Shown here: positions 1 to 42,447 of the stretch, piece by piece
Layout: the number at the start of each line of letters is the position of its first letter
Position numbering within the stretch: the stretch's first letter is position 1
NCBI GenBank assembly: GCA_965649825.1
Contig: OZ287697.1
Span: 372,001-436,000, forward strand
Direction: 5' to 3'
DNA: 64,000 nt
Origin: Penicillus capitatus
Taxonomy: Eukaryota; Plantae; Chlorophyta
Notes under the pieces: generated by a model
Databases searched by the model: none
Seen by the model: only the letters and a program-made list of their open reading frames with translations
What the model was told of the DNA's origin: nothing
Made by a program: the position numbers and the translations under genes

Positions 1-274
1 GAACATAAGCTGCCCTTAGCGCCAGACAATGCAAACAGTCGCTTCAACTGTATGACTCGCTGCATCGTCTTGTTAAACACATTGTGAACCTGACAATCAG
101 TCACATCATGGATGTCGAGCCTTCACATTCCGCGTAGAAGAATGCCTGTTTGGTATGCGCAGCCGTGTCTCGGCGGGACAATGCCTTGTGTAACTTCCAA
201 TAGTGTTCTCGAGTGGGTAATGGGAAAAACCTTTTATGATAGTGAAGCCAAGGGTTGCCTAAGGAGGGTAAACA

Positions 275-1200: not shown

Positions 1201-1424
1201 CCCTCACGTCTCCGGACTTGTCTCTTCGCGCTCTATCCTGTCGACAGAATCGAATGGCGACATGTCGGGCTGTGTCAGAACGCAATCAAATCGTATCAGA
1301 GATTCGCCGGAACAAAAAGAGCTGCTGACTGGATTGATCGGCAAAGGCAGAAATTGAGCATTTAGGAAATGAATATCGATTCAAAAGAAACGCATTTCAT
1401 TAATTCTCTATTTGCAAAATAGAC

Positions 1425-3034
1425 ATGCTGGTTTATCTGCTGAGCTGTTTACTGCTCTTTGTATTGGCTCGTGTGGCCTGGGCGCGTTGGAAATATGACA
1501 TGCACAAGATACCTTCTATGCCCGAATGGCCGCTGGTCGGACACGGACTTCACTTCGTGAACGGAAAGACGAAAAACGAAATTACGAGGGTCAGAGCACG
1601 TTTCTTTAAAGAACTTGGCTATCCCAAGATCATGAAAGCAAGTTATGCATCTTCGACGGGAAAAACGCGATGCGATCCCTGTTCTACAGTTGAATTTGTT
1701 CGGAAAAATCTACCTCGAAATTGTTGATGTTCACACAGCTAAGTCCTTGATTTTAAAGTCTAGCGACATACCAAGGACGGATTTACTTCCGCTTTTTTCG
1801 ATAGTAAGTTCTTTACCCCAGTTTGTTCTCTTCTTGATCTCATTGCATGTAGTTATTAGGAAATGATCTGACGACGAAGGTGATGCTCGTAACCCAGAAC
1901 CTCACCCCCTATGTCAAGAAGATTCGACGCATCTACGCCTCGGCTTTCCTCGGCAGCCATCTCAAGCGCATGGTCCCCAAACTGAACAGCGCCTTGGACA
2001 AAATGCTGGAGATCATCGAATCTCATCGCAAGACAGGCCCCATCGACCTGCAGCGGCTCTGCATCCGGCTGACGCTTGACGCTATTGGCATCGTGGCTTT
2101 CGAGACGAATCTAGGTGGATTGGACGAAAGCAGTAACCTCTGTCAACTGCTGAACGAGGCAGCTTACATCGCAGGGAATCGTCTCATAAATCCGTTCAAA
2201 AAACTCAAATGCAAGCTTTTCCCAAAAAACGCTGAAGCTCAGAGGGATAACGCAATCATTGACGCCTTGACAGCTGAGTGGGTACGCTTGACACGAGATA
2301 TCCTCTCCCGAGACGATCCTTGCGATGGGGAAACGCCCTTGTGGTTCGGGTTGAAACAGTTGGCGGATCCGAGTGCGGCAGAACCACTGGGTTTTAAGAA
2401 ACTTATGGGGGAAGTTGCAACGGTAGTATCAGCTGGGATGGATACGACAGGACATCAACTCTGTTGGGCATTGGCTCTTCTGGCCTCTTATTCCGATGCG
2501 ATGCAGACGCTCCTGGAGGAGTTCAAAGGCCGCGGACTGTATGGCGAAGCGGCGACAAGGGTGTCTTACGAAGATCTTGGAGACATGCCCTATCTAACGG
2601 CCGTCGTCAAAGAAAGCATGAGAATGGCGTCTGTCGTCACTGGCGCCATGCGTGAAGCTCCGTGCGACATGAAGATTCTGGGTTATCGGATTCCGAAAGG
2701 GACATATTTGTCACTTCCTAGCAACAGATGGCTGGATGCCAAAGACGAATGGGGCGATCCAGAAGTTTTCCGTCCGGAAAGGTGGCTGGAAGAGGAAGAC
2801 ATCTCGCAGCGTTACTATCTTGGCTTCTCATGCGGACCGCGAGACTGTGCAGGGCAGAAGCTGGCGATGCTGGAGATGCGAGTGGCCCTCATCCGTCTGT
2901 TAGGCGCCTATCACTTTTCTTTGACAGTTCCGTTTGACAAGCTGATGGACGACAGTCAAAACGGAATAGCGATTCGGGTGGAGAATGGAGTGTGGTTTCA
3001 CGTTACTCCCAGAAATCAAGTGACTACGCAGTAG
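1425..3034 (+). CDS. Cytochrome P450, copy 1 (502 aa, 3 exons)
   Basis: Exons 1425-1637, 1690-1803, 1853-3034 (1509 nt, in frame). N-terminal membrane anchor, I-helix AGMDTT, K-helix ESMR, PERW, haem motif FSCGPRDCAG. Intron 1 is GC-AG. Confidence 0.93.
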
Positions 3035-6000
3035 ACTGAACAGAAAAAAGACTCACTTTATTACAATTTCTGCCTATCTTTGTTGTCTGTGTGTGTTTCA
3101 TTAACCATTGCCAGGGCTGGATTCTGTTTTTCCAGTGGGAAAACAAAACAATGCGTGGAGTTCTTTCTTTTTATCTTTTGAGCGAGTATGCAGTGTTAAC
3201 TGTGCTATGAAGAAACCTTTTAACACATGTTGGGTTTAACTGAGGCAGACGTATACGGATGTGACGGCCCATCAGCCTGATTATGAAAGCGGAAGCTTAA
3301 GTAGATTCTTTGATCTTAGTGCTTTACCGATCTCACGTTTCCGCACAACAACAGGTTTTGGAGCGACAAACAAGGTCTGACTGATATCTTACCTGAAGAC
3401 ACAACAAAATCGCGGTCGGCTGCTGCAAAGACAAAGCTACCATCCTACAAATCAATCTCACGCTAGCGCCATACGAATGGAAGAGGGAATAGTGGATGAG
3501 ACGAACGCAATTTACAATATTTTACTCGTTTACACTCCTTTATCAATAGTGGTGTGTAGAGCATTAGGTGCGATTTCATTTCTTTGTTCTACGAGGTCAT
3601 CGGCAATTCCGTTTGAGAAGTTGGCGTTCGTTGTTCCCGCAGAATGGAAGGTCTTCCTACCCCATCAACTCCATGGTCCAGTGCAATGAACGTGCCCCCT
3701 CAGTTCCGGAGGATTGCCCACTTACAGAAATTGACCAAGGCTAGGAGAACGTTGTTGTGTTGTTTCGATAGATGATGCGACAGTGGTTCTCAAGAAGATG
3801 AAAACATTAAAGCCATTGCCATTATAACGAACTTTCTAAGTTTAAGTCTGTCGGTCCTTACGGTGCAACGTCCTGTTGACGGAATTAGTCTTGTCTTCAC
3901 GTCTTCATTCTCCTTAGGCCCTAAAGCTAGTTGGCCAATTCTCCTTAACCTGTTGTGTCCTGTGTCTGCACACGACACAGGACTGCGAGGGCCGATCGAC
4001 GCGGAGCTCGATGCTGCGGAGACGAGATAAACGATTGGCGCGAAAACAGGAATCATTACATTGCATCAGAGGGATCCAATGTGTCACTAGGATAGCTGTC
4101 CACCTTCGCGCAGCTATCCACGGAGTGGTATAAATTCCAGACTATAATGCTGCGGACTGTTTCCGGTCGGCCGCGCAGCGAAAACCAGATTATAGCGGAA
4201 GTCTTACAAGTCTTCGAATCAAGGTCTCGAATGATGCAGATAACCTGTCAAATACTCATGTAGTGAGTGACATGACGTCCCTAGGCAGATGAGTCACCAC
4301 ACTGCCAGAACCAGAGAAAAGGGCGCTCTGGAAGCCAATGCGCCCATGTGACGTGACAACAAGCATCCTTTCCAACAGATGACCTTGATGCAGGGCAGTC
4401 CCATCGCCAGGGAAATCTTGGCGATGCAGACATTCTCCCTAATTAACCTGCCTTCGTCGTGAGTTGTTTTCTGCGCGTACGACGGCGGGGCTGCGACAGC
4501 CTTAACGCAACATCCAAACGATCATCGGGCGGTCGCATGTGAACTCGCGGTGCATTTCCTAACAGTTAAAAAACCTAGATTATGATTTCTTAACCGTCCC
4601 GAGTATTGAAAACAGTGTTCTCCCGATCGTCCTTGTGGCAGCATATGATTTTTGTCTGGGGGCAACATCGCCCTTTGGTTCTCCAGGTTTTAATGGCTGT
4701 TAATGTCGTTGACTTCCTGTTTGCCCTTGACGGTGGCGGCGCTTCTGGACGGAGCTTCTCCGACGGTTCTCTGGGTTACGACTGACGAAAGTGGACTGCG
4801 CGTTCTCGAGAAGGTGGGCGACGGTCAGATCCGAGGCGTGCATGGTTGGCGCTGTGATCTGGAGTGTGGACGACGTGTGTGCTGCGGAGAGCTGGAAGTG
4901 CAGGAACTGACAAAGACAGACGAAGCACGGCTCCGAGTTATTCTAACCTCGAGTCGGGATGGACTCTTTTTTTTCACTCGGCTCAGCCCACAACGGTTTT
5001 GGAGGGTTTGCGCTGTGGGAAGTTCTTGCAGCGAGAACAGAAATATAGCTGTTCCTTTTTTCTCTGCCGAGGGACATGGCATATACTTGTCAAGTGACGC
5101 CATGTAAAATATAAAAATCTTCTTCTCCTTCCCTTTGGTTCTTGTCATACTTGGGGTTGTCGTCGGTGCCCGCTTCTGTCGTGGAGTTCGTGGTATGACT
5201 CTTCCTTAGACGGATTTTGTTTAACGTCGCCTTTGGTGAGGGCTCTTGGAACGTTTATGTCTCGACAAGGGAGTTGAATGGCAACTAGATTTCCAGCGTT
5301 TCTGAAGAGCTCGAGAGCTGTGTGGCCAAACGATGTAACGAGGAAAACAGATGAAATCTTACACGATCAAAACAGTCTCATTAGTTCTCTCATCTCGCAC
5401 TTGTTCACGTCTCATCAACGTCAGTCCACATCAGTAAGGAATGCAGGGCTGCGATAGAAAGAGGATCGTATAGAACGGGTGCCCGAGAAGTGTGTCGCGC
5501 GTCCTCGTCTGCCAAAGTTAACTTGAACGCAGAAGGCAACTTTACAAACTGTATGAAAAACAAAATGTCCTCCTCGGCCTCCTTTTTATCCGGACCGTGT
5601 GACGTGACCCGACTTGCATAGAATGTCCCTCGTCCGTCTTCCTCAAGCTGGCGGCCCGTCGTGTTACAGTTTTCTCACGTCTCATCCTGTCCGTTTCATC
5701 GACAATCTCTATACATATCTTGTGTTCTTGTGTTGCAATCGTTTGTTCTTCTCCGCCGTCGATCACGTCAAAGTCGACTCGAGCTTATCGAGTTACGATA
5801 AGATTCTTGTCGGAGGTTGGTGTGCAAATCGCTTTTGACAACCATAACGACCGTTGCGCGCATTCAATAACCATCCAGGCGCTCCAAAGCCATCGAGAGC
5901 GACAGATGAAGAACCTCCTCGCAACTTCCTCATAACAATAGGGGAATGGTTGTCGAACTCGCGCACAACTTCGCAACTGTTAGGAACTAAAGTTGGGAAT

Positions 6001-6189
6001 CCTTAACCATCACGTGTATTTAATGACAGCATTCGTCCTGCAATTAATCTCGTATTCCCTTTGCTATCGTCTGAGTGTTCGTTTGCGTCGTCGTCACGTA
6101 CCGATTCGACGCCGTGTTTTTCTAAGTGTTTACACGATCCCGACAATTCTCAACAGAAGTGAAGACTCGTTTCTACTAACGTATGGCCG

Positions 6190-7250
6190 ACTCTTAGTAC
6201 GTTGACATGACTGGAGCGTAGCTTCGAAATGTGGATGGAGTCAAGCTGAACAGTTTTCAAACGTAAAGAAAAAGTAGGTCCGACCAGTTTTGCACTCTAA
6301 TGTGTATCTACCCACTTTTTCACTTTACCTTAAAAACGCGGTCATAGTGTTGTGTTATAGCAATTAATCGACTGTGGCTGTGACGTTCGTTGCGCGACAG
6401 GCTCATCATGCACGACGTTGGCATGAGAGGACTAACGTCATTCTGAGTACTTATGCGGGAACTGTTTTGTATCCGTCTAAGTATTTAATTATACATTGCC
6501 GACGGAGTTTCCCAGTGCGACTCGCCATCCGGTCCGGACTCGGCCGTCTGGCCGACCCTCACAGTGCCCTTAAGAACATGGGCCCATTAAGTACATTGCC
6601 ACTGTTACGACCTATTTAAAAGTCTGATTATATTTTTCACTGTGCAACAGAACTCAATTAAAAGGAAAAAAGCCGTATCAAAGACATCCATGATGGATGA
6701 AGACTGTTTAGATGATCGTTGTCCCTGGCTGACCTGACAGTGCAACAGATGACAACATCACTGAGATCGGTGATCTATGAAACTTGGCATACTCGCATTG
6801 AGATGTTGATTCATGTATCATGCTTTACTAACACGGAAATCATACATGGCCTCAAGATATGCGAGGATCCGATTTTTTCAAGGGGAAAGCCGATGCGACG
6901 TAAGCCGCTTACCTACCTGCATGTCGTGCAATCCTCTATTGGCCGAGTGCCAAATTTTAAATGCTCATGTACGCATCTAAACGATGGTGGTGACATGCAG
7001 ATTGCATTTACGAATCAAAAAGACATATTGAATGGACAGCAATGAGCGAAAATGAGTCTAGCATGCCTTATTGTTCGAGTTACATCATTTGACTCTCGTC
7101 AAATGATACATGGTATTATACAACCATCACTGCAAGACAATCACATAGGTGTTGTCCTTCACAATCCCAGCTCAAATAAAAAAGCGAAAATAGATGATGA
7201 CGGCTGATGGGTGAGCAGTGCAACCACAATGAAATGTGAACCTCATTTGG
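6190..7250 (+). repeat. Duplicated non-coding block 3' of ankyrin-like copy A; partner at ~13850-14600
   Basis: Shared segments: gactggagcgta..cttcga.atgtggatgg (~6210 vs ~13870); gacatc.atga.ggatgaa.actgttt..gatcgttgtc..gacctgacagtg (~6680 vs ~14043); gttcgagttacatcatttgactctcg (7073 vs 14413). Moderately diverged; boundaries approximate. Confidence 0.8.
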
Positions 7251-7283
7251 GCCCCCGTGTTCATCTTCATTAGAGCGAAGCAT

Positions 7284-8069
7284 TTAGCAAATACCTCCGT
7301 CCTCTACCAAAGTACCGTTGTTCTGTTTGATGATCTATAGACATGAAGAGATGCTGATGGCGCTGTAAGGGATATGGACCTTACGTCTTTGACAATCTTG
7401 TTGACTGCCATATCGTATGGCAATGTTCCGTTGCACTTCTTGCAGATGTCCGCCCCGTTCTCGACCAAATGAATGACAACGCCAGCGCAGTTTGGATCGT
7501 CTGTGGATGCGGCCACACACATTGAAGTGTACCCATCATCGTTCTCGAGCTCGACTTCGGCATCGGCTTCCAAAAAGACCTAAGCAAGACAGTCGGTATT
7601 GCGTAAGGAATCGAGGCAGTCGAAGGTCGCACGTGTGCCATGGGTGTATTGCACTCTGCAGCGGCGTGATGTAGCGGTGTTCTTTTCTTCGCGTCCAGTA
7701 CATCGACCGGACAGTTCGGCGGAGTGTCGAGCATCAAATTGGCGTAGGCCACGGATTCGTATATGGCGGTCACATGGAGAAACGTTTTGTTTGTGACCGG
7801 CACGGGGTCAGGGTCACACGTGCAGTTGCAGATGTTGGGTGTCCCTCTTTTAATGGCGCGCCTAATCTTTCCTTCGTCCCGTTTGGCACAGCTATGCAGA
7901 GATTTGCCTGGCAGGAATCGGGATTGTCTGGGTCGGGCGTATGCTTAGGACCAGCCGTGACTATACAGTATGGTAGGTAGCGGTGAATGCGCTCGAAGTA
8001 GGGTAACTTACTAAAGCTCGCTCCGACGACGAAGAGAATTACCAAAGCGAAGATGCGCACAGAAGACAT
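7284..8069 (-). pseudogene. Secreted Cys-rich ankyrin-like protein, copy A (frameshifted)
   Basis: Near-identical to copy C (14627-15413) but 786 vs 787 nt. One G is missing near 7888 (gtttggca-cagct vs gtttggcagcagct), shifting exon 2 to a stop at 7770. Could also be an assembly error. Confidence 0.72.
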
Positions 8070-8222
8070 CCTTGAATCGTTCTACTCAAATAGAACGTCG
8101 TCCGGTTCGTATGGTCTGAGCAACGTGCGTTAGTCGAGTAATGGATCAGATGGTAAGCGAGCGGTCTTTATGCGCCTGGACGAACCGTTGAGAGCCGACG
8201 TCACAACAGCGAATGGCTTAGA
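8066..8222 (+). repeat. 5'-flank segment shared by ankyrin-like copies A and D (partner ~20666-20822)
   Basis: cttgaatcgttcta.tcaaa.agaacgtcgtccggttcgta...gacgtcacaacagcgaatggcttagag occurs at both loci, directly upstream of the ATG on the minus strand; absent upstream of copy C. Confidence 0.88.
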
Positions 8223-8324
8223 GGTGTACGTCGCATCTTGCCAGTACAAACTTGGTTAACTTGTGAATCGATATCGATTTAAAAGAAACGCGTTTTATTG
8301 ATTCTTTATTTGCAAAATAGACAC

Positions 8325-9940
8325 ATGTTAGTTTATCTGCTGAGCTGTCTGCTGATCTTTTTATTGTCTCGTGCGGTCTGGGCGCGCTGGAAATATGACG
8401 TTCACAAGATACCTTCCCCACGCGGATGGCCGTTGGTCGGACACGGACCTTACTTCGTAAGCGGAAAAGTGAAAATCGAAGTCGCGCGGGTCAGAGGACG
8501 CCTCTTCAAAGAACTTGGTTATCCCAAGATCATGAAGGCAAGTTATGCATCTTCGACTAGAAAAACGTTATGCGACCACCTCTGATGTTCTACAGTTGAA
8601 TCTATTCGGGAGAACCTGCGTTTTTGTTGTCGACAGCCACACTACCAAGTCCTTAATTTTGAAGTCTGGCGATATCCCGAAGGGGGATTTCGGTCAAATT
8701 TTTAAGATAGTAAGCAATTCGCCGTGGCTCATTCTCTGCTTGATCTCTACGCATGTAGATGGTCGGAAACGATCCGACAACGAAAGCGGTTGCAGGAATC
8801 CGAAGTCTCACCCCCTATGTCAAGAAGATTCGACGCATCTACGCCTCGGCTTTCCTCGGCAGCCATCTCAAGCGCATGGTCCCCAAACTGAACAGCGCCT
8901 TGGACAAAATGCTGGAGATCATCGAATCTCATCGCAAGACAGGCCCCATCGACCTGCAGCGGCTCTGCATCCGGCTGACGCTTGACGCTATTGGCATCGT
9001 GGCTTTCGAGACGAATCTAGGTGGATTGGACGAAAGCAGTAACCTCTGTCAACTGGTAGACAAGACGGGTTGCATTGCGTTCGATCGTCTCATGAATCCG
9101 TTCAAAAGACTCAAACGCAGGCTTTTCCCAAAATCCGCTGAAGCTCAAAAGGATAACGCAATCATTGATGCCTTAACGGTTGAGTGGGTGCGCTTGACAC
9201 GAGACATTCTCTCCCGCGACGATCCTCCAGATGGAGAGACGCCCTTGTGGTTTGGTCTGAAACAGTTAGCTGATCCGAGTTCAGCAGAACCACTGGAGTT
9301 TAAGCAACTAAGAGCGGAAGTTGCAACGGCAGTTATTGCTGGTATGGATACGACAGGACATCAACTCTGTTGGACATTGGCCCTTCTGGCCTCTTATCCC
9401 GGTGCGATGCAGACGCTCCTTAAAGAGTTCAAAGGTCGCGGACTGTATGGCGAAGCAGCGAAAAGGGTTTCATACGAAGATCTTGGAGACATGCCCTATT
9501 TAACGGCCGTCATCAAAGAGAGCATGAGAATAGCGTCGATCATTACCAGCATCACGCGGGAAGCGCCGCGCGACATGACGATTCTAGGCTATCGGATTCC
9601 GAAAGGGACATATCTATTCTGTCCTGGAAACAGATGGCTGGACGCCAAAGACGAATGGGGAGATCCAGAAGTTTTTCGTCCGGAAAGGTGGCTGGAAGAG
9701 GAAGACATCTCGCAGCGTTACTACTTCGGCTTTTCTTACGGACCGCGAGACTGTGCAGGGCAGAAGCTGGCGATGCTGGAGATGCGAGTGGCCCTCATCC
9801 GTCTGTTAGGCGCGTATCATTTTTCTTTGACAGTTCCGTTCGACAAGCTGATGGACGACAGTCAAAACGGAATTGCGATTCGGGTGGAGAATGGAGTGTG
9901 GTTTCACCTTACTCCCAGAAGTCAAGTGGCTACGCAGTAG
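8325..9940 (+). CDS. Cytochrome P450, copy 2 (502 aa, 3 exons)
   Basis: Exons 8325-8537, 8596-8709, 8759-9940 (1509 nt). AGMDTT, ESMR, PERW, FSYGPRDCAG. AAG/GCAAGT GC-AG intron 1. Confidence 0.93.
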
Positions 9941-11243
9941 ACTGAACAGAAAAAAGACTCACTTTATTACAATTTCTGCCTATCTACGTTGTCTGTGTGT
10001 GTTTCATTAACCATTGCGAGGGCTGGATTCTGTTTTCTCCGACGAGAAAGCGGAACAATGTGTGGACTTCTTTCTTATGCACAATCCGAACAAGGATGCA
10101 GTATTTGTTGTTCGTTGAAAAAACGTGTAACACATGTTGGGTTTATCCAAGGCAAAAGCGTATGCGAAGGCCCATCGGCCTGAGTCTCCTACCTCAACGC
10201 GTTAACAGTTTCGTCGGAATGCATACCAAGGAAATGACGAATGACATTTTGTACGCATCTCTCCGATGGTGGCCAAGATACCTAGAGAAGGCAGAAGGAG
10301 TGCATGAGAGTTGTCCCGATTGATTCATGTCACAAGCGCAGTCAAAATTGCTGACGTTAAATTACAGAGAACGATACAAGAGCGCAATGAGAGATTCGAA
10401 ATCGGAGCACGACAAACAACCTTTGTAACAAACATAGAACGGCAAAGATCTCAGTTCAAACAATCTAACGACAATAGGAAAGCTTATGCTTATCAACGGA
10501 TGTGTTTTAAAGCTATTGCTTTTAGTGATGAGATTTGAAGGCTAGATATAAATCTGGGAAGTTCGCGAGTGACTTTCACGACGATGTTTCGCGTGTCGAT
10601 CGGTTCCAAAACGGCGTGAGAGTGTGCGAATATAGCTGTCATAGAAGGTCACAAGAGGTCGATTTCAAACATGCCGATGACTTAGTTTGTCGTCATCATT
10701 CGGAATTGAACAAAACGATGGGACGCAATGACGTCTGACGCCACAACAGGCTTTCCTTCGAGTTACTTACCAGTAGTTGTCTATCAAGCACTTCGGTTGT
10801 CTCAGATCTACCACCAGTCTCGTTTTCTCCTCCCCTGCCTCTGCTTATTACGTCATCCTGAGTACAGGTGTTAATGCTTGGATAATTAGAGAAAGACGAC
10901 AAGGATTGCAGTATCGATTACATAAGATGACCCACTCGCCGTGGACAGCTCTCGCATGAAATCGAAAAATTCGTTCAGAAAGGACAACCCCCGCCCCGCC
11001 CCGCCCCGCCTGATGAAATTTCGGTGTTCATTCGACACAAATGCATCGCTGCCAGCTGGCTCTTGCCGTGGCATGGCGACAACAAGTAAAGACGTATAAG
11101 ACATTTGTTAGAAGCGCATAGAAAGAACAAAGACAATTCTATGGGCAACAATCGCACAACGAAACGATCCTTCGCAGAGCATTGGAGTGCTTGTACGAAG
11201 GCAATCAGACTCAAAGAAAAGATAGTACTAGATCATTTCTGGC

Positions 11244-12892
11244 TTAGCAGGTTCCGCCATCTTCGACACGTTTGCCACCTTTCTGTCCAATGACCTGCAG
11301 TGATAGAACAAAGCTCAGACGTGATGAGACTCAGTTGAGAGCGTACACTCTTGACAACGAAATCTTGTGCGACCTCGTAGGGGAGAGCCGTCCCGTTTGC
11401 CGTGGGACAGGGAGCGCAAATGTCTGCCCCGAATTCTACTAGATGATTGACGATGCCTCCGCAATGCATATTCGTGCTGTTGGACGATGCCACGACACAG
11501 AGAGGTGTTCTGTCGTCATCGTTGAGTTTCTCCATATCAGCGCCTCGAACCAAGTAGAGCTGGAGAGTGCCATTAGACTAAGGAGTTGATAGAAGGGAGA
11601 CTTACGTAGGCCGTCGGTGTGTTGCAAATTTGGGCAGCATCATGTAGTGGCGAATTCCCAACGGCATCTTCGACGTCCACGTCGCATTCAGGCGGTGTTT
11701 CCAGCATCACACTACCGAAGGCGATTGCCTCGTATGTCACAGCCTCGTGAAGAAGAGTGTTGCCAGTTGTTGTGTCGCAGACGCAGTTGCAAATTCCAGT
11801 AACATTGTTCTGGATGGCTTTTCTGATGAAGAATTCATCGCGGCGGGTAACAGCACTACACAACTCAGATGGACACAGCATTGCAGCTGATCTGCGAACT
11901 GTCGGAGAAGGAGAAGGAACGGTGACATTCGGAGCTGCCACCGGAGAAGGAACTGTGACATTCGGCGCTGGCATCGGAGAAGGAACTGTGACATTCGGCG
12001 CTGGCATCGGAGAAGTGGTCACGTTCAGGGAGATGGACGGTGAAGGAACTGTGACATTCGGCGCTGGCATCGGAGAAACGGTCACGTTCAGGGAGATGGA
12101 CGGTGAAGGAACTGTGACATTCGGCGCTGGCATCGGAGAAGGAACTGTGACATTCGGCGCTGGCATCGGAGAAGGAACTGTGACATTCGGCGCTGGCATC
12201 GGAGAAACGGTCACGTTCGGGGAGATGGACGGTGAAGGAACTGTGACATTCGGCGCTGGCATCGGAGAAGCGGTCACGTTCGGGGAGAGGGACGGAGAAG
12301 GAACTGTGACATTCGGCGCTGGCATCGGAGAAGTGGTCACGTTCGGGGAGAGGGACGGAGAAGGAACTGTGACATTCGGCGCTGGCATCGGAGAAGTGGT
12401 CACGTTCGGGGAGATGGACGGTGAAGGAACGGTGACATTCGGCGCTGGCATCGGAGAAGGAACTGTGACATTCGGCGCTGGCATCGGAGAAGGAACTGTG
12501 ACATTCGGCGCTGGCATCGGAGAAACGGTCACGTTCAGGGAGATGGACGGAGAAGGGACTGTGACATTCGGTGCTGCCACTGGAGAAGCGGTCACGTTCG
12601 GAAAAACGGAAGGAGGCGGAGTGCTGGTAATTGGTCCGACTGACGGCGAAGGTGTTTCTTCGACAACCGGAGGCATGGGCGAAGCTCTCGATTTCACGGA
12701 TGTCACTAGTGACCCCAAAAAGGACACAAACGAAGCAGGTTTATCATCATTTGTCTCATGTCTCAAATGACGCGCCGGTACACCTCGCACTAAAGAACAA
12801 AGAGTCTAACAAAGTGCACAGAACAGTGTTAGCTCACTTTCAACGGCAAAGATGAGCAAGAAAAGAACAGTAACGACTCCCGACGAAGACAT
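11244..12892 (-). CDS. Secreted Cys-rich ankyrin-like protein with mucin-like stalk, copy B (500 aa)
   Basis: Introns 12790-12837, 11560-11605, 11295-11346 (GT-AG, total in frame). Signal peptide MSSSGVVTVLFLLIFAVE; Pro/Ser/Thr repeats; then CPSELC..ICNCVCD, ankyrin-like NTLLHEAV / NSPLHDAA / RTPLCVVA, and C-terminus EDGGTC*. Confidence 0.8.
11905..12602 (-). repeat. Coding tandem repeat: interleaved ~30-33 nt units encoding PSPMPAPNVTV and PSPS(I/L)S(P/L)NVT(V/T/A)
   Basis: Repeated gaaggaactgtgacattcggcgctggcatcgga and gtcacgttc(a/g)gggagatggacgg units; 22 NVT tripeptides counted in the translation. Confidence 0.95.
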
Positions 12893-14626
12893 TGTTTTTT
12901 GAACACGGGTCACCGAAGGTCGAATCTTTATCAGGGACTCCCAAAACAGAAATACTCAGCTTTCTTTAATATTGCCAGAGACGGAAAACCTCAGCTTATA
13001 TAGTGCGCTTCCGCAGCACAGCAGAAGTCGCTTACGCTACCTGTGACTAGAGTCTCCGTTCTCCATACGTGGCAGCTGCGCGTCGATTTGACAAGACAGA
13101 TGACAGTGAACTCTATGGCTGTTTTCGAAGATCCAGACTCATGTCATCGCCTCCCATTTCTTAAACAACGCGGCATGATGCAGCACATTCTTGCGCCAGC
13201 GAAGACCAGGGTGTGGCAAAGTGACAGACACCTGTAAAGCTTCTCCTGATATGCAGCCAACACCAATGACTTCCTTTTTAGATGCTTCCTGGAATCGAGG
13301 GTCATTAATATTAGACGACACGTAGATACATCAGGTGAAAGCTCACGCGATGCTCGACGGTTCTTGGCGACGAAGCTGCTTGTTATGCTTCTGAGTATGA
13401 CAGTCAGTTTACCACAGGTCTGCCCGTGAACGTGTCAGATGATAGATATCGCGCCCACTGAACTTTCTTCTGTACGCATGCAGCTTTGCGGCTGTGTTTT
13501 AGCCGGAAGTGCAAACGGGAAGAGCGGAAAACGGACAGTGAAGGACAAAGAAGCTTGTCGCACGGGAGCGCCGCAATTGTTCGCTGAGAAGATAGGACAG
13601 AGGCCAAGCAGCCCCATAACCTCTGGAAGACCTGTCATGGCTTTTGGCAGCTGAACTTGACGGCGTGTGGGTAGAGGAATGCTCGAGAACGAATAGACCA
13701 AGCATCCGAAACCGCTTGGTGTTTTGTTGCTTGCAGTGGATTGGAAGCTGTCGGCCAGTCGAAGAGATCTCCTTTTCATTCTTCATCACAGTTCTCCGTT
13801 TTTTGACACATTGGATGGAGTCCAATACGCTTTTTCTACCCTTGTGTGGCTCGCCGTACTTTGACGTGACTGGAGCGTATCTTCGACATGTGGATGGCGT
13901 CCAGCTGAGAACTTAGTTTTTGAACGTAAAGGGACAGGAGGTCCGACCAGTCCACACTCTAACGTGTATTCCACTCAGTCTCACACTTTACCTTATAAGC
14001 TTGCGTTACAGAATTCGATGAAAGGAACGAAGCCGCAGCAGGGACATCTATGACGGATGAAAACTGTTTTGGTGATCGTTGTCTTCTGATGACCTGACAG
14101 TGTAACATGTAACAACAACACTGAGATCAGCGATTTCTGAGACTGCGCAACTCGCATTGAGATGTTTAGAATTTCGTATCATGCATCAACGGCACGGATA
14201 TCGAACATGGCCATATCGATGTGATGACTCAAGCTATGAATGGGACAGCCGATGCGACGTACGCTTACCTGTGTGTCATGCATCCTTTGTTACATGAGAC
14301 TGAATTCTTATGCCCGTGTCTGAATGACAGTGACATGTGTGTTGTACTTGTTAACCGAGTGTATTGGGCCGACAGCGACGAGCGAGAGCATATAGGTCAA
14401 ACATGCATTGTCGTTCGAGTTACATCATTTGACTCTCGGCAAATGATACTTGGCAACAAATATCCATCACAGCAAAGCAATCATCCAGAAGTTGTCCGCC
14501 ACAATCACATCTTGTGAGTGAGTGGATACAAACGACGATAGCTGATGGATAATCAACGCAAAAAATAACAACAAGAATTACGATCCTCCTTCATGCCCCA
14601 TGTTCATCTTCATTAGAGCGAAGCAT

Positions 14627-15413
14627 TTAGCAAATACCTCCGTCCTCTACCAAAGTACCGTTGTTCTGTTTGATGATCTGTAGACAGGAAGAGATGCTGA
14701 TGGCGCTGTAAGGGATATGGACCTTACGTCTTTGACAATCTTGTTGACTGCCATATCGTATGGCAATGTTCCGTTGCACTTCTTGCAGATGTCCGCCCCG
14801 TTCTCGACCAAATGAATGACAACGCCAGCGCAGTTTGGATCGTCTGTGGATGCGGCCACACACATTGAAGTGTACCCATCATCGTTCTCGAGCTCGACTT
14901 CGGCATCGGCTTCCAAAAAGACCTAAGCAAGACAGTCGGTATTGCATAAGGAATCGAGGCAGTCGGAGGTCGCACGTGTGCCATGGGCGGATTGCACGAT
15001 GCGGCGGCGTCATGCAGCGGTGTGCTTTTCTTCGCGTCCTGTACATCGACCGAACAGTTCGGCGGGGTGTCGAGCATCAAATTGGCGTAGGCCACGGATT
15101 CGTATATGGCGGTCACATGGAGTAGCGTTTTGTTTGTGACCGGCACGGGGTCAGGGTCACACGTGCAGTTGCAGATGTTACGTGTCCCTCTTTTAATGGC
15201 GCGCCTAATCTTTCCTTCGTCCCGTTTGGCAGCAGCTCTGCAGAGATTTGCCGGGCAGGAATCGGGATTGTCTGGGTCGGGCGTATGCCTAGGACCAGCC
15301 GTGACTATACAGTGCAGAAGATAGCGGTGAATGCGCTCGAAGTAGGGTAACTTACCAAAGCTCGCTCCGACGACGAAGAGAATTACCAAAGCGAAGATGC
15401 GCACAGTATACAT
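14627..15413 (-). CDS. Secreted Cys-rich ankyrin-like protein, copy C (210 aa)
   Basis: Introns 15305-15355, 14923-14975, 14678-14727 give 633 nt. Signal peptide MYTVRIFALVILFVVGASF; KTLLHVTA, STPLHDAA, YTSMCVAA and TLPYDMA repeats; 12 Cys; ends EDGGIC*. Confidence 0.85.
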
Positions 15414-16104
15414 CCGACTTGTTGCCTGTGAAATGGCACGTCAGCTGGTATGGAAACCTCGATAATACTAGAACACCAATACGAGGACTCTGTTACAGGG
15501 TGGTCTTTTGTACGTCAAGATAGACCGTCGCCACCTGACGTCACGGAAACGATTGGCTCAGGCGTGAATGCTGTGCCTTCGTCAGGAAATCTTCATTGCG
15601 AACTTCGTATCGACGCATCTGTTTACTTATGTTCTTAACGTCAAATCGTATCTCAAGTTCACGACGCAAGTAGATCAAGTCTTTTCCATTCGTCTCATTC
15701 AGATAAGCTGCTTTATTCAAAGAGAATGCCGGTGGATGTCCACCCTCCATCTTACGACTCGCAAGAGTCAGCATCGGTATTCTGGAATGACGACGATTCG
15801 TAGAGGTCGATGCCGCAAATGACGTCTGAATCAACAGAACAGCGAAGCAATGGAACATCGCGATGTGACGTTCACCTCTGATTGAACAATCCGTTAAACC
15901 ACTATCGTTGTTTTAAACAATACCCAGTTCATGTCTTAACACATCTTCTGCAACATTCTTCGCATCCGTCTACCACGATTCATGCAAACATGTGAAAAAA
16001 GAACTTCTGAATGCAACGGAAGGGACCATGATCAACAAACGGTTCAGCCAACAACAAAAGATAGGAATCTAGTCGTGGCAGAGAGCGTCACAAAACTTCG
16101 CAGT

Positions 16105-16909
16105 TCAACAGTCCAGGAATTCCTCGACAACCTGTTGCATGGCAAAGAATGAAGGAAAACGCGAATGATGAAGAAATGCTCACCGCCTTGATAGTGGGAT
16201 CGCTTGCCGTCTCAGCGGCAGTTTTGCCGCCTTTGCAGATAGGACATATTTTCCTGGTGCCTCCTTCGGTAATTCTTTCAAGCATACTCCGAAGGAGAGC
16301 ACTGCCCACGGCTGGGCAATTCAGAGTACAGAGACAAAAAGCAGAGTTTCCGTCGCTGTCCACCTTCATGAGATCCTCGACGGAGTAATCGCCGGAGCCC
16401 AAGAGGTACTACAACATCGCGAAATAAGAGAGAATGAACAGAAAGGGAAAACTTCCTACTGCGGCCTTAAAGACATAGCAGGGGTTTTTTGCGCAAGCAA
16501 GGTGAAGGGGCGTTTGCTTTTTCACATTCAGGAGGTCAAGGTCACATCCCTCGTTCCGCAAACGCTCCAGGCCGACATTACCGTGCGGGTTGCCAGTGTC
16601 TGCTGCTTCGTGGGAAAGTGTATCGCCATTGGGAGGGCATGTGCACGTGCAGAGATCGGGTATGTCCGACAACTTCTCGGTGAATTTTACGCTGTCTTCT
16701 TGCACCCATGTACAAGCTTCATCTGGCACGCAGTCTGCTTTCAACGTACGCGTCGGTTTCATATTTGTCGCGGCGAAACTTTCCCGCGGCGTCGCGTGTC
16801 CTGTTCACAGCGTAGCTCACGTAAGCAGACGGGACGGGAATGACAGTTTACCCATCTCCGCAACGGAGACGACGCAGAGGAGAATCATCCAAACCGTGTA
16901 TGTCGACAT
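16105..16909 (-). CDS. Secreted Cys-rich ankyrin-like protein, copy E (divergent, 216 aa)
   Basis: Introns 16801-16851, 16409-16459, 16132-16183 give 651 nt. Signal peptide MSTYTVWMILLCVVSVAEMG; CVPDEAC, LCTCTCP, DTLSHEAA, QTPLHLAC, ICPIC; ends EFLDC*. Confidence 0.7.
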
Positions 16910-19880
16910 TGTCAGAGATTGCGGTTTCTGAATTCGATGCTTCGAGGAGAGGGAGGTCGGAAAGGAACTTGTGGTTCGGCAAAGCGCGTCTCCCTTTTAT
17001 ACCCCCGAAGCGAGGCGCTGCCGCGCAGCCTCGCGGAATATCCGTTTGCCATCCAGCGGATTGTCAACTGCTTCTTCTTTGCAGAGTTCACTGGAAGCGT
17101 GAAGGTCCTTAGCATTCGTTTTCTCTTTCGCCGCAGACGATTGGCTCGATGCGACTCCTCCTCTGGAGGTTAGACGAAGCGGCAGAGAAACGCGCTTCGC
17201 TAAGAAGCTTTGCGACGAAATGACTGTACCGCTGCCTCTGTCTACGGACTTCGAGGGAAGCCACGCATCGCCGCCAAACGTGGAGTCCTCCGCGGCGGAG
17301 AGGCCGCGTTCGCGCTTGTTTTGGCCGCAGAACGCTGCTTTCAGGAACGATATCGTATGCTGTCGCGACTTCCTGCCGACACGGTATCTCTCTGTCGACA
17401 CCGTGGCGAACTGCACACCACGCGACGGCGAAGAGACCGTCCGTCTGCTTCGTTCAGTAAAGACGGCAGCGTTCGTCGTTTTGTTGTTCTCAGTGTTGTT
17501 GCAAACGACGGATAACGGCGTCTCCGACACGGAGCTTCACACGATGGATATCTAATTTCCTTCGGAACAGTTGTGTTATGGCGGCTGTTGAGAGAGAACG
17601 GTCGATTTTAACATTCCGCGCCGTAGGCGACTTTACAAAAGCATACGCAGTTTTCGTTGCGCGCATTTTACCAACGTATTCTTCAAAGTCTCGGCATTGC
17701 GCCCAGATAGGTAAAAACTCGTCACTGTGAACAGTATTGTGTATACTTCTTGTAGGCCGAGCGAAGATTCGAAAAAACTTAGTTTTTGCGAACTGCGCAG
17801 AATAAAAAGCGAGTGTCCGTTCATGGAGGTAAGTGTGACGGCGCAATTTCTAGCAGCACTCGAGGGCGATTCGACTTGACGTGGTGCCCCATCATTTTTC
17901 GCATTGCGCGACAGTCGGAACTGTCTTAGCACAAGCAAGCACATCTAAATGTCAGCCGCACTGAAATCCTTTGCTTCACAGGTGTTCCGAACGCTGCCTG
18001 ACGAAGCAGCCTAGATATCAAGCAAAATCTTCCTAAACAGGTTTTCATTGCCTGCAATTCACGCGATTCTATCAAGTGAGACATCGATGTGTTTTCGAAT
18101 TCTGCACACGAAAAGGAACAGCTATGCCATACGAAATAGATGATCATGAGAGATCAGAGCAAAGGTCGAATCTCTGTGTGTCTGACAAGAAGAGACGAGA
18201 ACTTTTTAAGATCTGTTTCAGGAGCAGATGAACGAAGCACCTTGGCGAATATCGAACGATTCATGACAGATGCCACAGACATTGACAGATCAGTGGCAGA
18301 CTCGTGTGTTCTCTAGAAATGTGGAGAATCTAATGAAGAGGTTTGCGATGTCAGAACAATGTTGTCGTACCTTCTCATGCGCTGATTTGCTTCAGTCTGT
18401 AACGCACTTGCGTTCTGATCCATGAATGTCGATGAAGTGGTGGACAACATCATTTGGTTCTGTGTTGTGAACAAAACCCCTGACGAAAGGTTCATTGAAC
18501 TCCCTTTAGGTATGTCGCTAATTTAGAAACAATGGCCTCGCTTAATACGTGTGCGTCTTTACATCCATTCTTAAAACACTCCGTATCATCGTCCGCTTTC
18601 ATGGTATACGATCTCATTGTCGATTCTATGGAAACAACCAACACCATCCTTCCGAACAACTGCCTTCTATCAAATGTTATGGTGACGTCTTTCCTCTTTA
18701 TACCGTATAGGACTGCTGACGTCTTCGTCGTGAAGAGTAGAGATAAAGTGCAGAGCTTCAGGTAAACGTATCTCGCTGATCAGAGCTCCCGTGTGGTACG
18801 CACTCTTTGTACACTCTAATAAACAAGCTTATGATGACCGAAAAACAGAGTAACAGGTAGAATACACATAGTAGGTAAACAATCAACAAAGTCTTCACGA
18901 TAGCCCTTGAAGATCTCAGAATTACCTGCCTCAGGTATTAATAGACTTAATTGAAGAAACAGTGGCGTTGGCAGTCCACTGCAAAAACGATAGCTTCTAA
19001 CAACAATCGAAAGAAGAATGTCCACTCTCTTTGTTTCTTGGATATTGTGACTTACTTCTCAAACAACTTTCACCTCATTCAGTGCATGCGCCCCTACAGC
19101 GCGAATCGAAACTGAAACACTGCCCGCAGCATTACCGGACGCTAAAGGCTACGCCATAAACCTTACACCATCGAGCAACGCGTGAGCAACTGGCGACGGG
19201 TAGACCCTGGAGGACACGCCAATCTCCAAACAGCCGATCCCCCCATTGCCGAGACAACGGTGATTGCGTTGAACTAGCCTCGACCGTCGGACATGCTCAT
19301 GCCAACAACACTCTGTTTGCAGAGGTAGACGCCCTATCTGCGACTCGGTCCATCGCACAGCGCGTTCGACCTTGGCAGCGCGTGATGTGACGTTTGCGAA
19401 GCTGAAGGAAGACAGCAGACGTCACATGTCTGCTCTTCGACAACGAACACGATCTTCTGTCTCCGAGACGAAGTCCCATAGATCTCTGCGATAGAATAAA
19501 CAATGACTGCCGATGTGGTGATTGAGTAGGTGAGTATCCTTGTTTTTCGAGACCCCTTACCTGCACAGTCGTCACAGATGATTCGCATTCATGCGTCGAT
19601 CGCGAAATTGAATCGATAGAGTGAGAACGGCGTGTGGCACATCGAAACCAAGAGCCTCATCGTTGTGAATTACACCATTTGAATTTGGTCAATTGATACG
19701 TGGCACGGTAGATTTGTACCCGAAGAATCCTTCACTTTGGGACTCATACTAATGTCGAACAATGAGTAGCTCGTGATAACACGCGACGATTGACGATGTG
19801 TTTGTAACGAACGCAAAATGTCAAAAAACGTGGCACTGTCTTAGCGACAGTCGAGCGATACTGTGCAGAAAACGCTGCGT

Positions 19881-20669
19881 TTAGCACATACCCCCATCCT
19901 CCTTCTTCGTACCGTTGTTCATTTCAATAATCTGCACAATGAATGCAATGTTTAACTCCCGAGGCACGACTAGCAGCAACTTACGTCTTTGACAATCTTG
20001 TTGGCTGCCATATCGTATGGCAATGTTCCATTACACTTCTTACAGATGTCCGCCCCGTTCTCGACCAAATGAATGACAATGCCGGCGCAGTTGGGATCAT
20101 CTGTGGATGCGGCCATACACATTGGAGTGTATCCGTCATCGTTCTCGAGCTCAACTTCGGCATCGGCTTCCAAAAAGACCTAAGCAGGACAGTCCTCACA
20201 CTAAAAACTGAAAAAGCTAGATGAGGGACGTACGTATGCCATAGGCGTGTTGCACGCTGCCGCGGCGTCGTGCAAAGGCGTGAAGTTCTTAGCGTCCAGC
20301 ACATTGACCGAACAGTTCGGCGGTATGTCGAACATCAAGTTGGCGTAGGCTACGGATTCGTAGATGCCGGCCACATGGAGGAGCGTCTTGTTCGTGACCG
20401 GTTCGGGGTCAGCGTCGCACGTGCAGTTGCAAATATTGGGCATCCCTCTCTTGATGGCGCGTCGGATCTTTCCTTCGTCACGCTTAATAGCAGCTCTGCA
20501 GAGATTTGCCGGGCAGGAATCGGGATTGTCTGGGTTGGGAATGAACGCCGGGTTCGCCGTAACTGCAGTGCAGAAGATAGCGGTCGATACCCTCGGTTTA
20601 GGGTAACTTACCGAAGCTCGCTCCGACGACGAGGAGAATTACCAAAGTGAAGATGCGCACAGAAGACAT
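19881..20669 (-). CDS. Secreted Cys-rich ankyrin-like protein, copy D (210 aa)
   Basis: Introns of 49, 54 and 53 nt give 633 nt. Intron 1 contains an in-frame TAA, which supports splicing of this intron in the family. Same 12 Cys as copy C; ends EDGGMC*. Confidence 0.85.
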
Positions 20670-20864
20670 CCTTGAATCGTTCTAGTCAAAGAGAACGTCG
20701 TCCGGTTCGTAGGGTCTAAGCAACGTGCGTTGGCGGAGGAATGGATCGCTGGGAAGCGAGCGGTCTTTATGCGCCTGGGCGAACCGTAGAGAGCTGACGT
20801 CACAACAGCGAATGGCTTAGAGATGAACTTCGCATCTTTCAGTGCGAACTTGATACATTTGAGA

Positions 20865-22410
20865 ACGAATTTCGCAGCGGCTTTGCGGAATATCTGTAGC
20901 ACCTATTCTTACAGGTTGTGATGAACAAAACGTCGTGGCCACTGCATCGAAAACGATACGGATGTCTTGTCGTTTCGGCGAGGTCTGCCATTCAGGGATG
21001 TGTGTTAGACCCTAATCGCATACGGCTGTCCGACCCCTTTGGTGAATGAAGCCGCTATCTCTCACCTTTTTCGCGGCAGCGTCGTACTAGTGGACTCTCT
21101 GTCGGTTTTGGGACCTAGACCCCAATCATATGACGAGCTTCATTGGGTAATGCTGTACCATACTGACTGAATGACCGTCAAGAAATGAAGCTACGAAGGA
21201 CGGATCGACATAGCAACCTCGACGGCGTTGTTGTTCTGACGTTGTTTAGGGAATGGATATCATGGAAGTGCCGAATTAGAGCAGTGGCGTTGTGCATGCT
21301 AACTTACCTGGCTGGACAGCATGACTGATCTCCATAACGACGAGTTGCAGGAAACTCGTTTTGCAGCATCTAGTTCTGATAATACAGACGATTCTGCTTC
21401 TGTTGATGACACTAGACGAGCAACAGTCTTGTATCAAGGTCCATGTCAAAGCCGTCAGAGTTTTCTCAGTCGTCGAGTTCTATCTGCATGGCTGTTGTAC
21501 CTGAGTCTTGAGAACATTAGCGGGAGGATGACATTTCTTTCAATGGATGCGCTTGCTTCAAACTGTAAATAATATTCATCATATATACGCCGCTGCAGTC
21601 ACTTACTCTAGCGCCGAGTCTGGGAACACATAACTGCATCTCGGATGCAGTGTGCTTATTACACTCCTCGCACAATACCATTGTTGAAGGTTCGGGCTTT
21701 CGGCAAGTTCAAGACACACATCTCCTTTAGACCCAAGCTGATTACGGGGACTGGGCGGCTCTTTGGCAGACAGCGACAAGGCGAGGGGAGGGAAGGTATT
21801 TTGGATGCTAGCCAGTATGGATCTCAGCTTTGTCATAGCGACATGCGTTCGGCTTTCGTTACTCCTAGGGCCCTTTTCTCGACATTGCCCGCTGTCGATC
21901 AACAAGCACTTGGCATCGCGTCGTCATTTTGGACTTAGGACGGAACTGATCGTTGCGTTCCTTTATGCGTTAACAGATGTTGCAGTCCAATGCTCTTGTC
22001 GCTTTTATCGTCTCCGCCCATTCGATGAGCTCCATTCAGGCGTGTTAGATTATCCTCACCAGAGAATGATGCAGAGCAGGTGGCGAATTGAGACATGCCG
22101 TTTTAAGAAAGTCGTGAATAGTATTTTCTTGGATGCTCTATTCAGCCGGTCTTGAACAAAGCAATCAGCTTGTTCTTCAATGGCACAAAAAAGTTCTCGT
22201 ACGGAATGCATTACACAAAAAGGTAGCTGCTACAGTGATTGTCTAGAAGGAGAATACCTTTGCCAGTATCCAATCACATAGCTACTGCAAAACATCTCAC
22301 TACGGATAAGAATCCTTTGTACACCCACCAGACAACAAAAACAAAAAAAAAGAGTGGACATCGTGCTGTGCGTGACAGACCAATTCAGACTGTCATCGTT
22401 ATTCCCCTGC
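20865..22410 (+). repeat. Second copy of the CYP1-upstream block, with ~650 bp extra sequence (~21595-22250)
   Basis: Collinear with 275-1200; not followed by a P450 here. Confidence 0.8.
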
Positions 22411-22457
22411 TTCCTGATGACCACTCATCCACCACCGCCATAACCGGCATAAGCGCT

Positions 22458-23218
22458 CTAAGAACTGCAGCGGCCATGCCAGCCACCGTATTCTCTCTGA
22501 AGAAGGATCTGGTAGGCAGACATTGTATTCGAGGCATGCACTTGCCAAAGAGAGAAATGCACGCACGTTTTTGACGTTTTCGTCTCCAGACTGATCCGCC
22601 AGTTCTCTGGGCAGAAGATCGTTGCATCGATCGCAGATGTCGACGCCGCCAATATCAATGTACTGATTAATAAGGCCTCCACAGTCGGGATCGTCTATCA
22701 CAGCCGCACAGCACAGGGGCGTCAAACCATCGTTGTTTTCAATCGTCGTATCGGCGCCAAGATTCAGAAGAAGCTGCAAAACAGCACCACACGGCAGTCG
22801 GTAGAACTGGATGCAGTGAATAGACGTACGGCGTTCATGGGCGATTGGCAGAAGCGGCTTGTCGTATGCAAAGGCGTGTCGCCCCTGTCGTCTGTAACTT
22901 GCATGTCGCATTGAAAACGCTCGGCCTTGATGAGCTGTCTGGCAAAAGTGACGGCTTCGAACTGAGCTGCCAAGTGAAGCAGCGTCGTACCCATGTCGTC
23001 GCAGACGCACGTACAAACACTCGACCCATCTTCAATCGCCTCGAGCACGGACGCATCCCGGCGCTTAACTTTTTCACAGATTACAGATGGGCATTCGCCC
23101 GCCATTCCTACAGAGGTATACAGATCCTCTCCGCGGTTTCTTCCACGACGGGACACGCACCGGTGCTGAACGCGGCACAGAGACAGGAAACGACGAAGAA
23201 CAGGTGAAGTGACGACAT
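22458..23218 (-). CDS. Secreted Cys-rich ankyrin-like protein, copy F (197 aa)
   Basis: Introns 23108-23160, 22774-22829, 22509-22566 give 594 nt. Signal peptide MSSLHLFFVVSCLCAAFSTG; ECPSVIC, VCTCVCD, TTLLHLAA, DTPLHTTS, LTPLCCAA, ICDRC; ends HGRCSS*. Confidence 0.8.
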
Positions 23219-40183: not shown

Positions 40184-40416
40184 CTTGTCGACCTAAATCG
40201 AAAACCCGATGTGGCCCAACGCCCTTTGTTCTCACTCAAAAATGATGTGCCGTGTCAGACGCTCTTGTATCTCTGTACCGGTAACAAGTCATTGGTAAAA
40301 AGTGTGATCTCACATGCAGTCGATTCTCACGAAAATAGGGTGGTCATTCCTACTAGGCAACGACGAGGCAACCGCAAGACATATTTCTATAAACGCGAAC
40401 TTCTCTAAGAACGACG

Positions 40417-42335: not shown

Positions 42336-42447
42336 CGTCTCACTCTTTTAAGTAATGGTCGAGTCTCATGCGCCAATCTAGCATTACATCAAAACGAGCA
42401 TCATTCAGCGCCACGCGTTTCAAAGATAAGAGACCGCGCACGCCTCT

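Follow-up and report, generated by a model that had tools for sequence, protein, structure and literature searches.

A 64,000-nt stretch of Penicillus capitatus DNA (assembly GCA_965649825.1, contig OZ287697.1, positions 372,001 to 436,000 of the forward strand; hereafter the window) carries six paralogous genes, A to F, whose products combine a known fold, that of ankyrin repeats, with a new Cys-framed and probably secreted variant of it, which is evolving conservatively and is not immune-receptor-like. The six paralogs are real, constrained genes, and that they are real genes with an ankyrin fold we regard as highly probable.

When the window was searched by tblastn with three divergent members as queries, six copies and no more were found, all of them on the minus strand between positions 7284 and 23218. 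Spliced models, assembled by hand from three-frame translations and the DNA, gave four exons in each of the six genes (Table 1), with all 18 introns of the GT-AG type, 46-66 nt long, located at homologous positions and in phases 1/0/0. The same four-exon structure recurs in seven further copies and orthologs outside the window. Exon 1 (55-58 nt in all six genes) codes for the initial Met and a hydrophobic stretch, exons 2 and 3 together encode the ankyrin domain, and the last exon (27-51 nt including the stop) bears the last Cys. A preliminary description of this DNA had claimed six minus-strand genes of one architecture, each with a first exon closing in a phase-1 intron, and both claims are confirmed by the models; the limits that it gave are also exact, position 7284 being the last base of the stop codon of A and 23218 the A of the ATG of F. 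Two details had to be amended. Six copies are indeed present, but gene A has lost one nucleotide after CQANLC, which leaves the remainder out of frame. Likewise, the tiny last exon ends in Cys as described in A to E, whereas F ends in RCSS and its ortholog Fr (see below) in SCGFSSVYG, so the Cys is near-terminal and not strictly terminal. The possibility that these open reading frames (ORFs) are artefacts of a repeat or of a larger gene was rejected, as the stop right after the terminal Cys (near-terminal in F and Fr) is kept in all copies and orthologs.

Table 1. Coordinates in the window of the six genes of the ankyrin family and of the tandem repeat within gene B.
Feature	Positions	Strand	Details
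Gene A, C-type, frameshifted pseudogene allele	7284..8069	-	exons 8069-8012, 7960-7633, 7579-7385, 7334-7284
Gene B, 500 aa	11244..12892	-	exons 12892-12838, 12789-11606, 11559-11347, 11294-11244
Tandem repeat in exon 2 of gene B	11910..12601	-	Tandem Repeats Finder: 63 nt period, 10.8 copies, 86% matches, 692 bp
Gene C, 210 aa	14627..15413	-	exons 15413-15356, 15304-14976, 14922-14728, 14677-14627
Gene E, 211 aa, most divergent member	16105..16909	-	exons 16909-16852, 16800-16475, 16408-16184, 16131-16105
Gene D, 210 aa	19881..20669	-	exons 20669-20612, 20562-20234, 20179-19985, 19931-19881
Gene F, 197 aa	22458..23218	-	exons 23218-23161, 23107-22830, 22773-22567, 22508-22458

Concerning the 3' ends of these genes, the pentamer TGTAA is the usual chlorophyte polyadenylation signal. 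It is found 200 to 322 nt past the stops at 7284, 11244, 14627, 19881 and 22458, which weakly supports five of the six models against a background of 0.75 occurrences per kb per strand; gene E has no TGTAA within 600 nt of its stop. A scan for sigma-70 promoters and terminators, irrelevant for a eukaryote, gave only matches at chance level.

The ankyrin fold claimed for these proteins in the preliminary description was borne out by profile, model and structure comparisons. The products score above the cut-off of 27.3 bits with Pfam Ank_2 (PF12796, CL0465) in C (39.1), B (34.6), E (35.9) and F (53.3), and Ank (PF00023) likewise passes its threshold in C, B and F; phmmer searches against PDB sequences returned ankyrins, designed ankyrin repeat proteins (DARPins) and other ankyrin proteins. 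An AlphaFold2 model of mature C, built on an alignment of the five window paralogs, reached a predicted local distance difference test score (pLDDT) of 87 and a predicted template modelling score (pTM) of 0.85, and contains five helix pairs. In Foldseek, this model superposes on N3C DARPins, its best PDB matches, and on the ankyrin repeat clusters (ARCs) of tankyrase, with template modelling (TM) scores of 0.73/0.84 and a root mean square deviation of 2.2-2.6 A over about 165 columns, and the top 50 PDB matches (TM 0.71-0.76) are all ankyrin or DARPin structures. For the most divergent member, E, the model has a pLDDT of 71.5 and also leads to DARPins (TM 0.55-0.65). In the repeat register, the N-cap has P-A-N-L-C-R-A-A in place of the consensus T-P-L-H-x-A-A, repeats 1 and 2 have T-L-L-H and T-P-L-H, repeat 3 has T-S-M-C-V-A-A, and the C-cap has L-P-Y-D-M-A. 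Modelling thus depicts the domain as a single five-repeat ankyrin solenoid of DARPin-like shape. The 3-4 repeats of TLLH/TPLH type counted earlier have to be revised accordingly to two canonical T-x-L-H repeats and three degenerate ones, making up the five helix pairs.

The second defining trait of the family is a framework of 12 Cys, found at positions 7, 12, 35, 37, 39, 74, 94, 121, 131, 146, 149 and 181 of mature C (numbered from PDNPDSC). It is kept in every intact member and ortholog down to pairwise identities of 25-37%. Nine aligned members and orthologs share 22 invariant columns out of about 171, and 10 of the 22 hold a Cys; the other two Cys of the framework are displaced by 1-4 residues, in gene E only. 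As C and E are only 27% identical, the chance retention of all 12 Cys would have a probability of about 0.27^12. Total Cys numbers are 12 in B, C and D, 15 in E (one in the signal region and 14 in the mature part) and 15 in F (two and 13, respectively), the mature counts being those reported previously together with the claim of 12 traceable positions, which thus holds. Mature B, C and D (12 each) and E (14) have an even number. Two framework residues, C12 and C121, replace the His of the TPLH motif, and each is followed by an I-C-x(1-2)-C loop at about position 31 of the repeat (C35/C37 and C146/C149, respectively); this recurrence suggests a staple within the repeat that is itself repeated. 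C94 and C131 are located in the inter-helix turns of adjacent repeats. From the repeat register alone, C7-C39, C12-C35, C37-C74, C94-C131, C121-C146 and C149-C181 are proposed as putative pairs, and about six disulfides among the framework Cys are plausible. In E, the two extra Cys belong to the first helices of neighbouring repeats, where a seventh bond could link them.

As for a secretory route, all members begin with Met and a hydrophobic core of 10-13 residues, with a Kyte-Doolittle hydropathy (KD11) of 2.7-3.3, and have candidate sites with small residues at -3/-1 (VGA|S, IFA|V, SVA|E, CAA|F); these candidate signal peptides were called from hydropathy and from the -3/-1 rule. Across eight C-type sequences, no part of the protein varies more than this region, which nevertheless remains hydrophobic. 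No second hydrophobic segment was found, as no 19-residue window beyond the N-terminus has a hydropathy above 1.6, and the C-termini (GGIC, GGTC, GGMC, LDC, RCSS) show neither KDEL/HDEL nor a tail like those for glycosylphosphatidylinositol anchors. Prenylation of CaaX, CC or CXC type was rejected on the basis of C-termini that read ...GGIC, ...GGTC, ...GGMC, ...FLDC, ...GRCSS and ...SCGFSSVYG. Three N-glycosylation sequons are conserved in C-type proteins: NKT where repeat 1 begins, NGT following the CxxC motif and NGT in the last exon.

Gene B has in addition a Pro-rich repeat linker of about 300 residues between the signal-like exon and the ankyrin domain. Its tandem array codes for PSPMPAPNVTV / PSPSISPNVTV units with about 22 N-V-T sequons, of a total of 25 N-x-S/T sequons in B; classical SPPP or (SP)n blocks are absent from the stalk, and B is the only member that carries a Ser/Pro-rich shaft. 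A long, Pro-rich, glycosylatable stalk is a hallmark of wall and extracellular glycoproteins of the green lineage, and the classic shaft of hydroxyproline-rich glycoproteins (HRGPs). Because such an array is hard to explain in a cytosolic protein, it was counted in favour of the secretory route, and entry into the secretory pathway followed by export is the fate that these features favour. Antisense to the array there is a 337-aa ORF (window 11757-12770, plus strand) made of GEGTVTFGAGI units, which is a by-product of the 63-nt repeat and not a gene.

To place the family in a wider context, copies were located beyond the window. A radical-SAM protein encoded in the window was matched only on the metagenome assembly ERZ25074695 of the European Nucleotide Archive (ENA), contig ctg340516_41x_l (1.46 Mb), which places the window in an unannotated eukaryotic genome within a long-read metagenome. 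At least five further loci of the family lie elsewhere in the same assembly as the window. Positions 1-12650 of one contig at 21x coverage (L003) align to positions 12724-1 of the 41x window at 96.5-97.6% identity, so this contig is either an alternative haplotype with about 3% divergence or comes from the second of two co-occurring strains. It carries an intact allele (H, L003 4431-5217) of the frameshifted gene A. Exons 3 and 4 of A (7284-7579) are 100% identical to those of C (14627-14922), with 96% identity in the intron between them, whereas allele H is only 95% identical there; that A resembles C more than its own allele points to gene conversion or to partial duplication in the very recent past. 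Another contig (L001) has one lone member, G. A second cluster (L004 1-10418, ERZ25074695 ctg327768_20x), with 72-78% nucleotide identity to that of the window, contains three intact C-type genes, I, J and K (1001-1792, 2802-3592 and 9627-10418), plus E-like and B-like fragments, and stems either from a segmental duplication of old date or, given its half coverage, from a related organism.

Orthologs were found in the related genome of assembly ERZ26696514, in which the starch synthase and the alpha/beta hydrolase encoded in the window have counterparts with 96% and 86% protein identity, respectively, and the gene order is that of the window. The hydrolase ortholog served as a stepping stone to a locus (L007) where the orthologs of D and F, named Dr (3092-2302) and Fr (5614-4838), share 91% and 74% protein identity with their window counterparts and keep their order, spacing and four-exon structure.

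These orthologs allowed the mode of evolution to be analyzed. Between D and Dr, dS is 0.55 and dN 0.045 (dN/dS 0.08), the differences at the three codon positions number 18:3:54, and the exons are 84-90% identical without gaps, compared to 54-65% with gaps for the introns. The dN/dS value is 0.37 for F and Fr, and 0.16-0.20 among C-type paralogs. In three neighbouring genes of the same two genomes it is 0.17 (hydrolase), 0.38 (sigma factor) and 0.25 (aminodeoxychorismate synthase), with dS of 0.44-0.47. As the value for D is below those of all three neighbours, D is more constrained than these housekeeping genes, while F is inside their range. Variable columns among the eight C-type sequences cluster in the signal region and the short linker before the first Cys, with hardly any change on the repeat surface. 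The tandem duplication, the single pseudogene allele and the gene conversion suggested above belong to ordinary gene-family dynamics.

The distribution of the family was then considered, with searches of limited sensitivity. A word-indexed database search with C returned only three matches, fragmentary ORFs of prokaryotic style from the ENA sample of the window's own assembly; as a negative result this is weak, since the search missed a 73%-identical ortholog that was later recovered by synteny. An exhaustive profile search of 1.84 billion representatives with a five-member alignment gave 207,262 matches. Motif-anchored scans, built on the C/D/B and F/Fr alignments, for ICNC[TV]CD, HDAA..CN, VE.GADIC, VCTCVCD and LHLAAQFE did not, within that sensitivity, find relatives in JGI metagenomes, IMG/VR or GTDB genomes (one genome per prokaryotic species), the sole match (L009) being a generic ankyrin protein without Cys; therefore, an origin from giant viruses or bacteria has no support. 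So far, the family is restricted to two related algal genomes in metagenome assemblies. Full-text literature searches turned up no account of an algal family of secreted ankyrin proteins with a Cys framework. They yielded effectors with a signal peptide and ankyrin repeats from Plasmodiophora and oomycetes (PMC8282356, PMC4471660, PMC11139960), bacterial Ank effectors, latrotoxins and one paper that mentions ankyrin-like annotations in the ectodomains of chlorophyte receptor kinases (PMC12757656). Within these limits, neither database nor literature searches matched a described family, which supports the earlier view of this one as a candidate for an undescribed system.

Taken together, these data lead us to propose the following mechanism. 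A mature protein of about 190 residues would comprise an N-cap repeat, a pair of canonical T-x-L-H repeats, a further repeat with the His-to-Cys change and a C-cap. Its hydrophobic N-terminus (16-22 residues, on an exon of its own) would act as a cleavable signal peptide for entry into the endoplasmic reticulum (ER), where the 12 invariant Cys would pair into about six disulfides, stapling together the caps and the inter-repeat loops. The conserved N-x-S/T sites would be glycosylated and the protein exported to the cell wall or extracellular matrix, where its groove, conserved and not hypervariable, would bind a conserved endogenous partner. Member B would display an ankyrin head on a long, glycosylated, Pro-rich stalk, in the head-and-shaft design of green-algal hydroxyproline-rich wall glycoproteins. 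This whole chain, from a secreted, disulfide-framed ankyrin family to binding in the wall or matrix, we consider moderately probable. That it would constitute the first natural family of extracellular disulfide-stapled ankyrin domains, working as wall or matrix binding modules in a free-living photosynthetic eukaryote and including the B chimera, is put forward more tentatively, as possible but somewhat short of probable.

Several observations weigh against this proposal. Only one of five AlphaFold2 models of C was confident (pLDDT of 87 compared to 38-59), on an alignment of just five sequences, and the best 150 of the 207,262 profile matches are all giant (1000-6500 aa) ankyrin arrays, which dominate because whole-sequence scores add up over repeats, and are uninformative on the distribution of the family. 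An odd number of mature Cys (13) is present in F, Fr, H, I, J and K, with the extra Cys at different positions in F and Fr and also non-conserved in H, I, J and K, while the CxCxC, CxxC and CPxxxC motifs could be metal ligands. The n-region of B, E and F is uncharged, without basic residues, and N-glycosylation sequons are absent from E and F, although one is present in Fr. Part of this evidence would equally fit entry into the endomembrane system followed by retention in a lumen (ER, Golgi, vacuole or other) as disulfide-stabilised binding proteins, given that a signal-like N-terminus and a Cys framework suit any oxidising lumen, that E and F lack sequons, and that the strong purifying selection on D suits a housekeeping lumenal partner. 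We nevertheless hold such retention to be unlikely, although deserving of attention, as the proteins show no KDEL/HDEL, transmembrane segment or obvious sorting motif and the NVT stalk of B is of the kind typical of wall and extracellular glycoproteins. It is also conceivable, but improbable, that the N-terminal stretch is an uncleaved anchor or goes unused, leaving a cytosolic ankyrin domain whose Cys clusters bind zinc or are lipidated. Ankyrin repeats are overwhelmingly cytosolic, the Cys motifs look like clusters of metal-binding or palmitoylation type, and the n-region without basic residues in B, E and F agrees with this explanation; however, a core of 10-13 residues is too short to span a membrane and is followed by small residues at -3/-1, the C-termini have no CaaX boxes, the 12 Cys are spread along the solenoid instead of in four-ligand groups, and neither the stalk of B nor conserved sequons make much sense in the cytosol.

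The preliminary description had interpreted the cluster as a birth-and-death recognition family for immunity or symbiosis; such a family would diversify on a fast-evolving concave face. The tandem arrangement, the wide divergence of the four types (25-50% identity), the single pseudogene allele and additional C-type copies on other contigs, as well as the faster evolution of F compared to D, could be invoked in its favour. Nonetheless, D and F have syntenic one-to-one orthologs with dN/dS of 0.08 and 0.37, against 0.17-0.38 in neighbouring genes, the paralogs remain at 0.16-0.20, and the check for a variable binding face placed the variable sites in the signal peptide and the pre-domain linker, with a nearly invariant repeat surface in the eight C-type sequences; the interpretation was thus abandoned as quite improbable. 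We assign a very low probability to secreted effectors delivered to a host or partner, of the Plasmodiophora or oomycete type, for which the alga would have to be a symbiont or parasite. The genome does come from a metagenome sample, and a signal peptide plus ankyrin repeats is a known effector architecture (PMC8282356, PMC11139960), but effectors that work in the cytosol of a host do not normally have a disulfide framework and glycans, no motif for translocation was seen, strong conservation like that of D is atypical for effectors, and the gene context is fully that of a photosynthetic organism with starch metabolism. Export to the wall or matrix is the reading that we retain as the most probable.

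Compared to known systems, the family shares 33-residue helix-turn-helix repeats, the T-x-L-H motif and a predicted, superposable solenoid with canonical ankyrin domains such as those of AnkyrinR/B, the tankyrase ARCs and the N3C DARPins. Canonical ankyrin domains are cytosolic and Cys-poor, and the algal family differs from them in its signal-like exon, 12 invariant Cys, His-to-Cys changes in two repeats, Cys-rich loops after the N-cap and repeat 3, sequons and a near-terminal Cys on a mini-exon. A similarity in design, and in nothing else, links it to extracellular solenoids of leucine-rich repeats (LRRs), such as the ectodomains of plant LRR receptor-like kinases, Slit and variable lymphocyte receptors, in which both ends of a repeat solenoid have disulfide-bonded caps; the repeat fold is another one, without homology, and by analogy of mechanism the Cys-rich N- and C-caps may serve the ankyrin solenoid as LRRNT and LRRCT serve the LRR. 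Gene B may have in common with green-algal HRGPs (pherophorins, GP1, agglutinins) the order of a putative signal peptide, a long, repetitive and heavily glycosylatable Pro/Ser-rich shaft and a Cys-containing globular head; its head, however, is an ankyrin domain and not a pherophorin or other known head, PSPMPAPNVTV is neither (SP)n nor SPPP, and the other members are shaftless. Latrotoxins of spider venom have ankyrin repeats that work outside the producing cell, and they appeared among the PDB matches through generic repeat similarity only; unlike the algal proteins, they are pore-forming, exceed 1000 residues with about 20 repeats, lack Cys-framed caps and belong to an unrelated lineage. 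Finally, the PbPEs of Plasmodiophora brassicae and secreted ankyrin proteins of oomycetes couple a classical signal peptide to ankyrin repeats (PMC8282356, PMC4471660, PMC11139960). They differ in acting inside host cells and in having no conserved disulfide framework, whereas the family described here belongs to a photosynthetic green alga, is under purifying selection and has syntenic orthologs, and its sequence kinship to them is that of the generic repeat only.

Few protein-binding modules are as common as ankyrin repeats, which nearly always are intracellular and poor in Cys. If the proposed mechanism is true, the family would illustrate how such repeats can be made to work in oxidising surroundings outside the cell, with a bearing on fold evolution, and would be a third solution for extracellular repeat scaffolds besides LRR and beta-propeller ectodomains. 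It would also be a natural counterpart of the engineered DARPins, offering naturally stapled scaffolds for protein engineering, and B would contribute an unrecognised head domain for HRGP-like proteins, of relevance to the biology of algal walls and matrices. In more general terms, long-read metagenome assemblies hold whole unannotated algal genomes, with gene families of this kind that are invisible to protein databases derived from prokaryotic gene callers.

The genes around the cluster encode a starch synthase III (three CBM53 domains plus GT5), a plastid-type sigma factor, an aminodeoxychorismate-synthase-like protein, cytochromes P450 and an alpha/beta hydrolase. The nearest named matches to the starch synthase III, 52-66% identical, are from Haematococcus, the Scenedesmaceae transcriptomes GHRQ/GHUV (PMC7382218), land plants and Chlamydomonas, and this enzyme with its three CBM53 domains supports a green-algal host. 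Three close P450 paralogs are found in the window (1880-3034 and 8759-9940 on the plus strand, 52864-54018 on the minus strand), two of them interleaved with the ankyrin cluster, and the arrangement is repeated on the alternative haplotype, with P450 genes at L003 2564-3751 and 9612-10763.

Two other features of the window are of interest. About nine small proteins (190-366 aa) form a tandem family that extends over 39458-48018 (plus strand) and 34067-35167 (minus strand); it is lineage-specific and expanded, and its members have the motifs LTNRRIVI, FRYKDLQHIS, LDFYK..TV.SW and LYEH.LTQFAEDK together with one or two hydrophobic segments. The two members examined gave no Pfam match at E<=0.001. 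Further downstream, at 51019-52059 on the plus strand, a 346-aa ORF without Pfam match has a coiled-coil-like middle and a C-terminal CCHC motif (CYSCRCKGHLAQNC) similar to zinc knuckles, and may be gag-like or derived from a retroelement.

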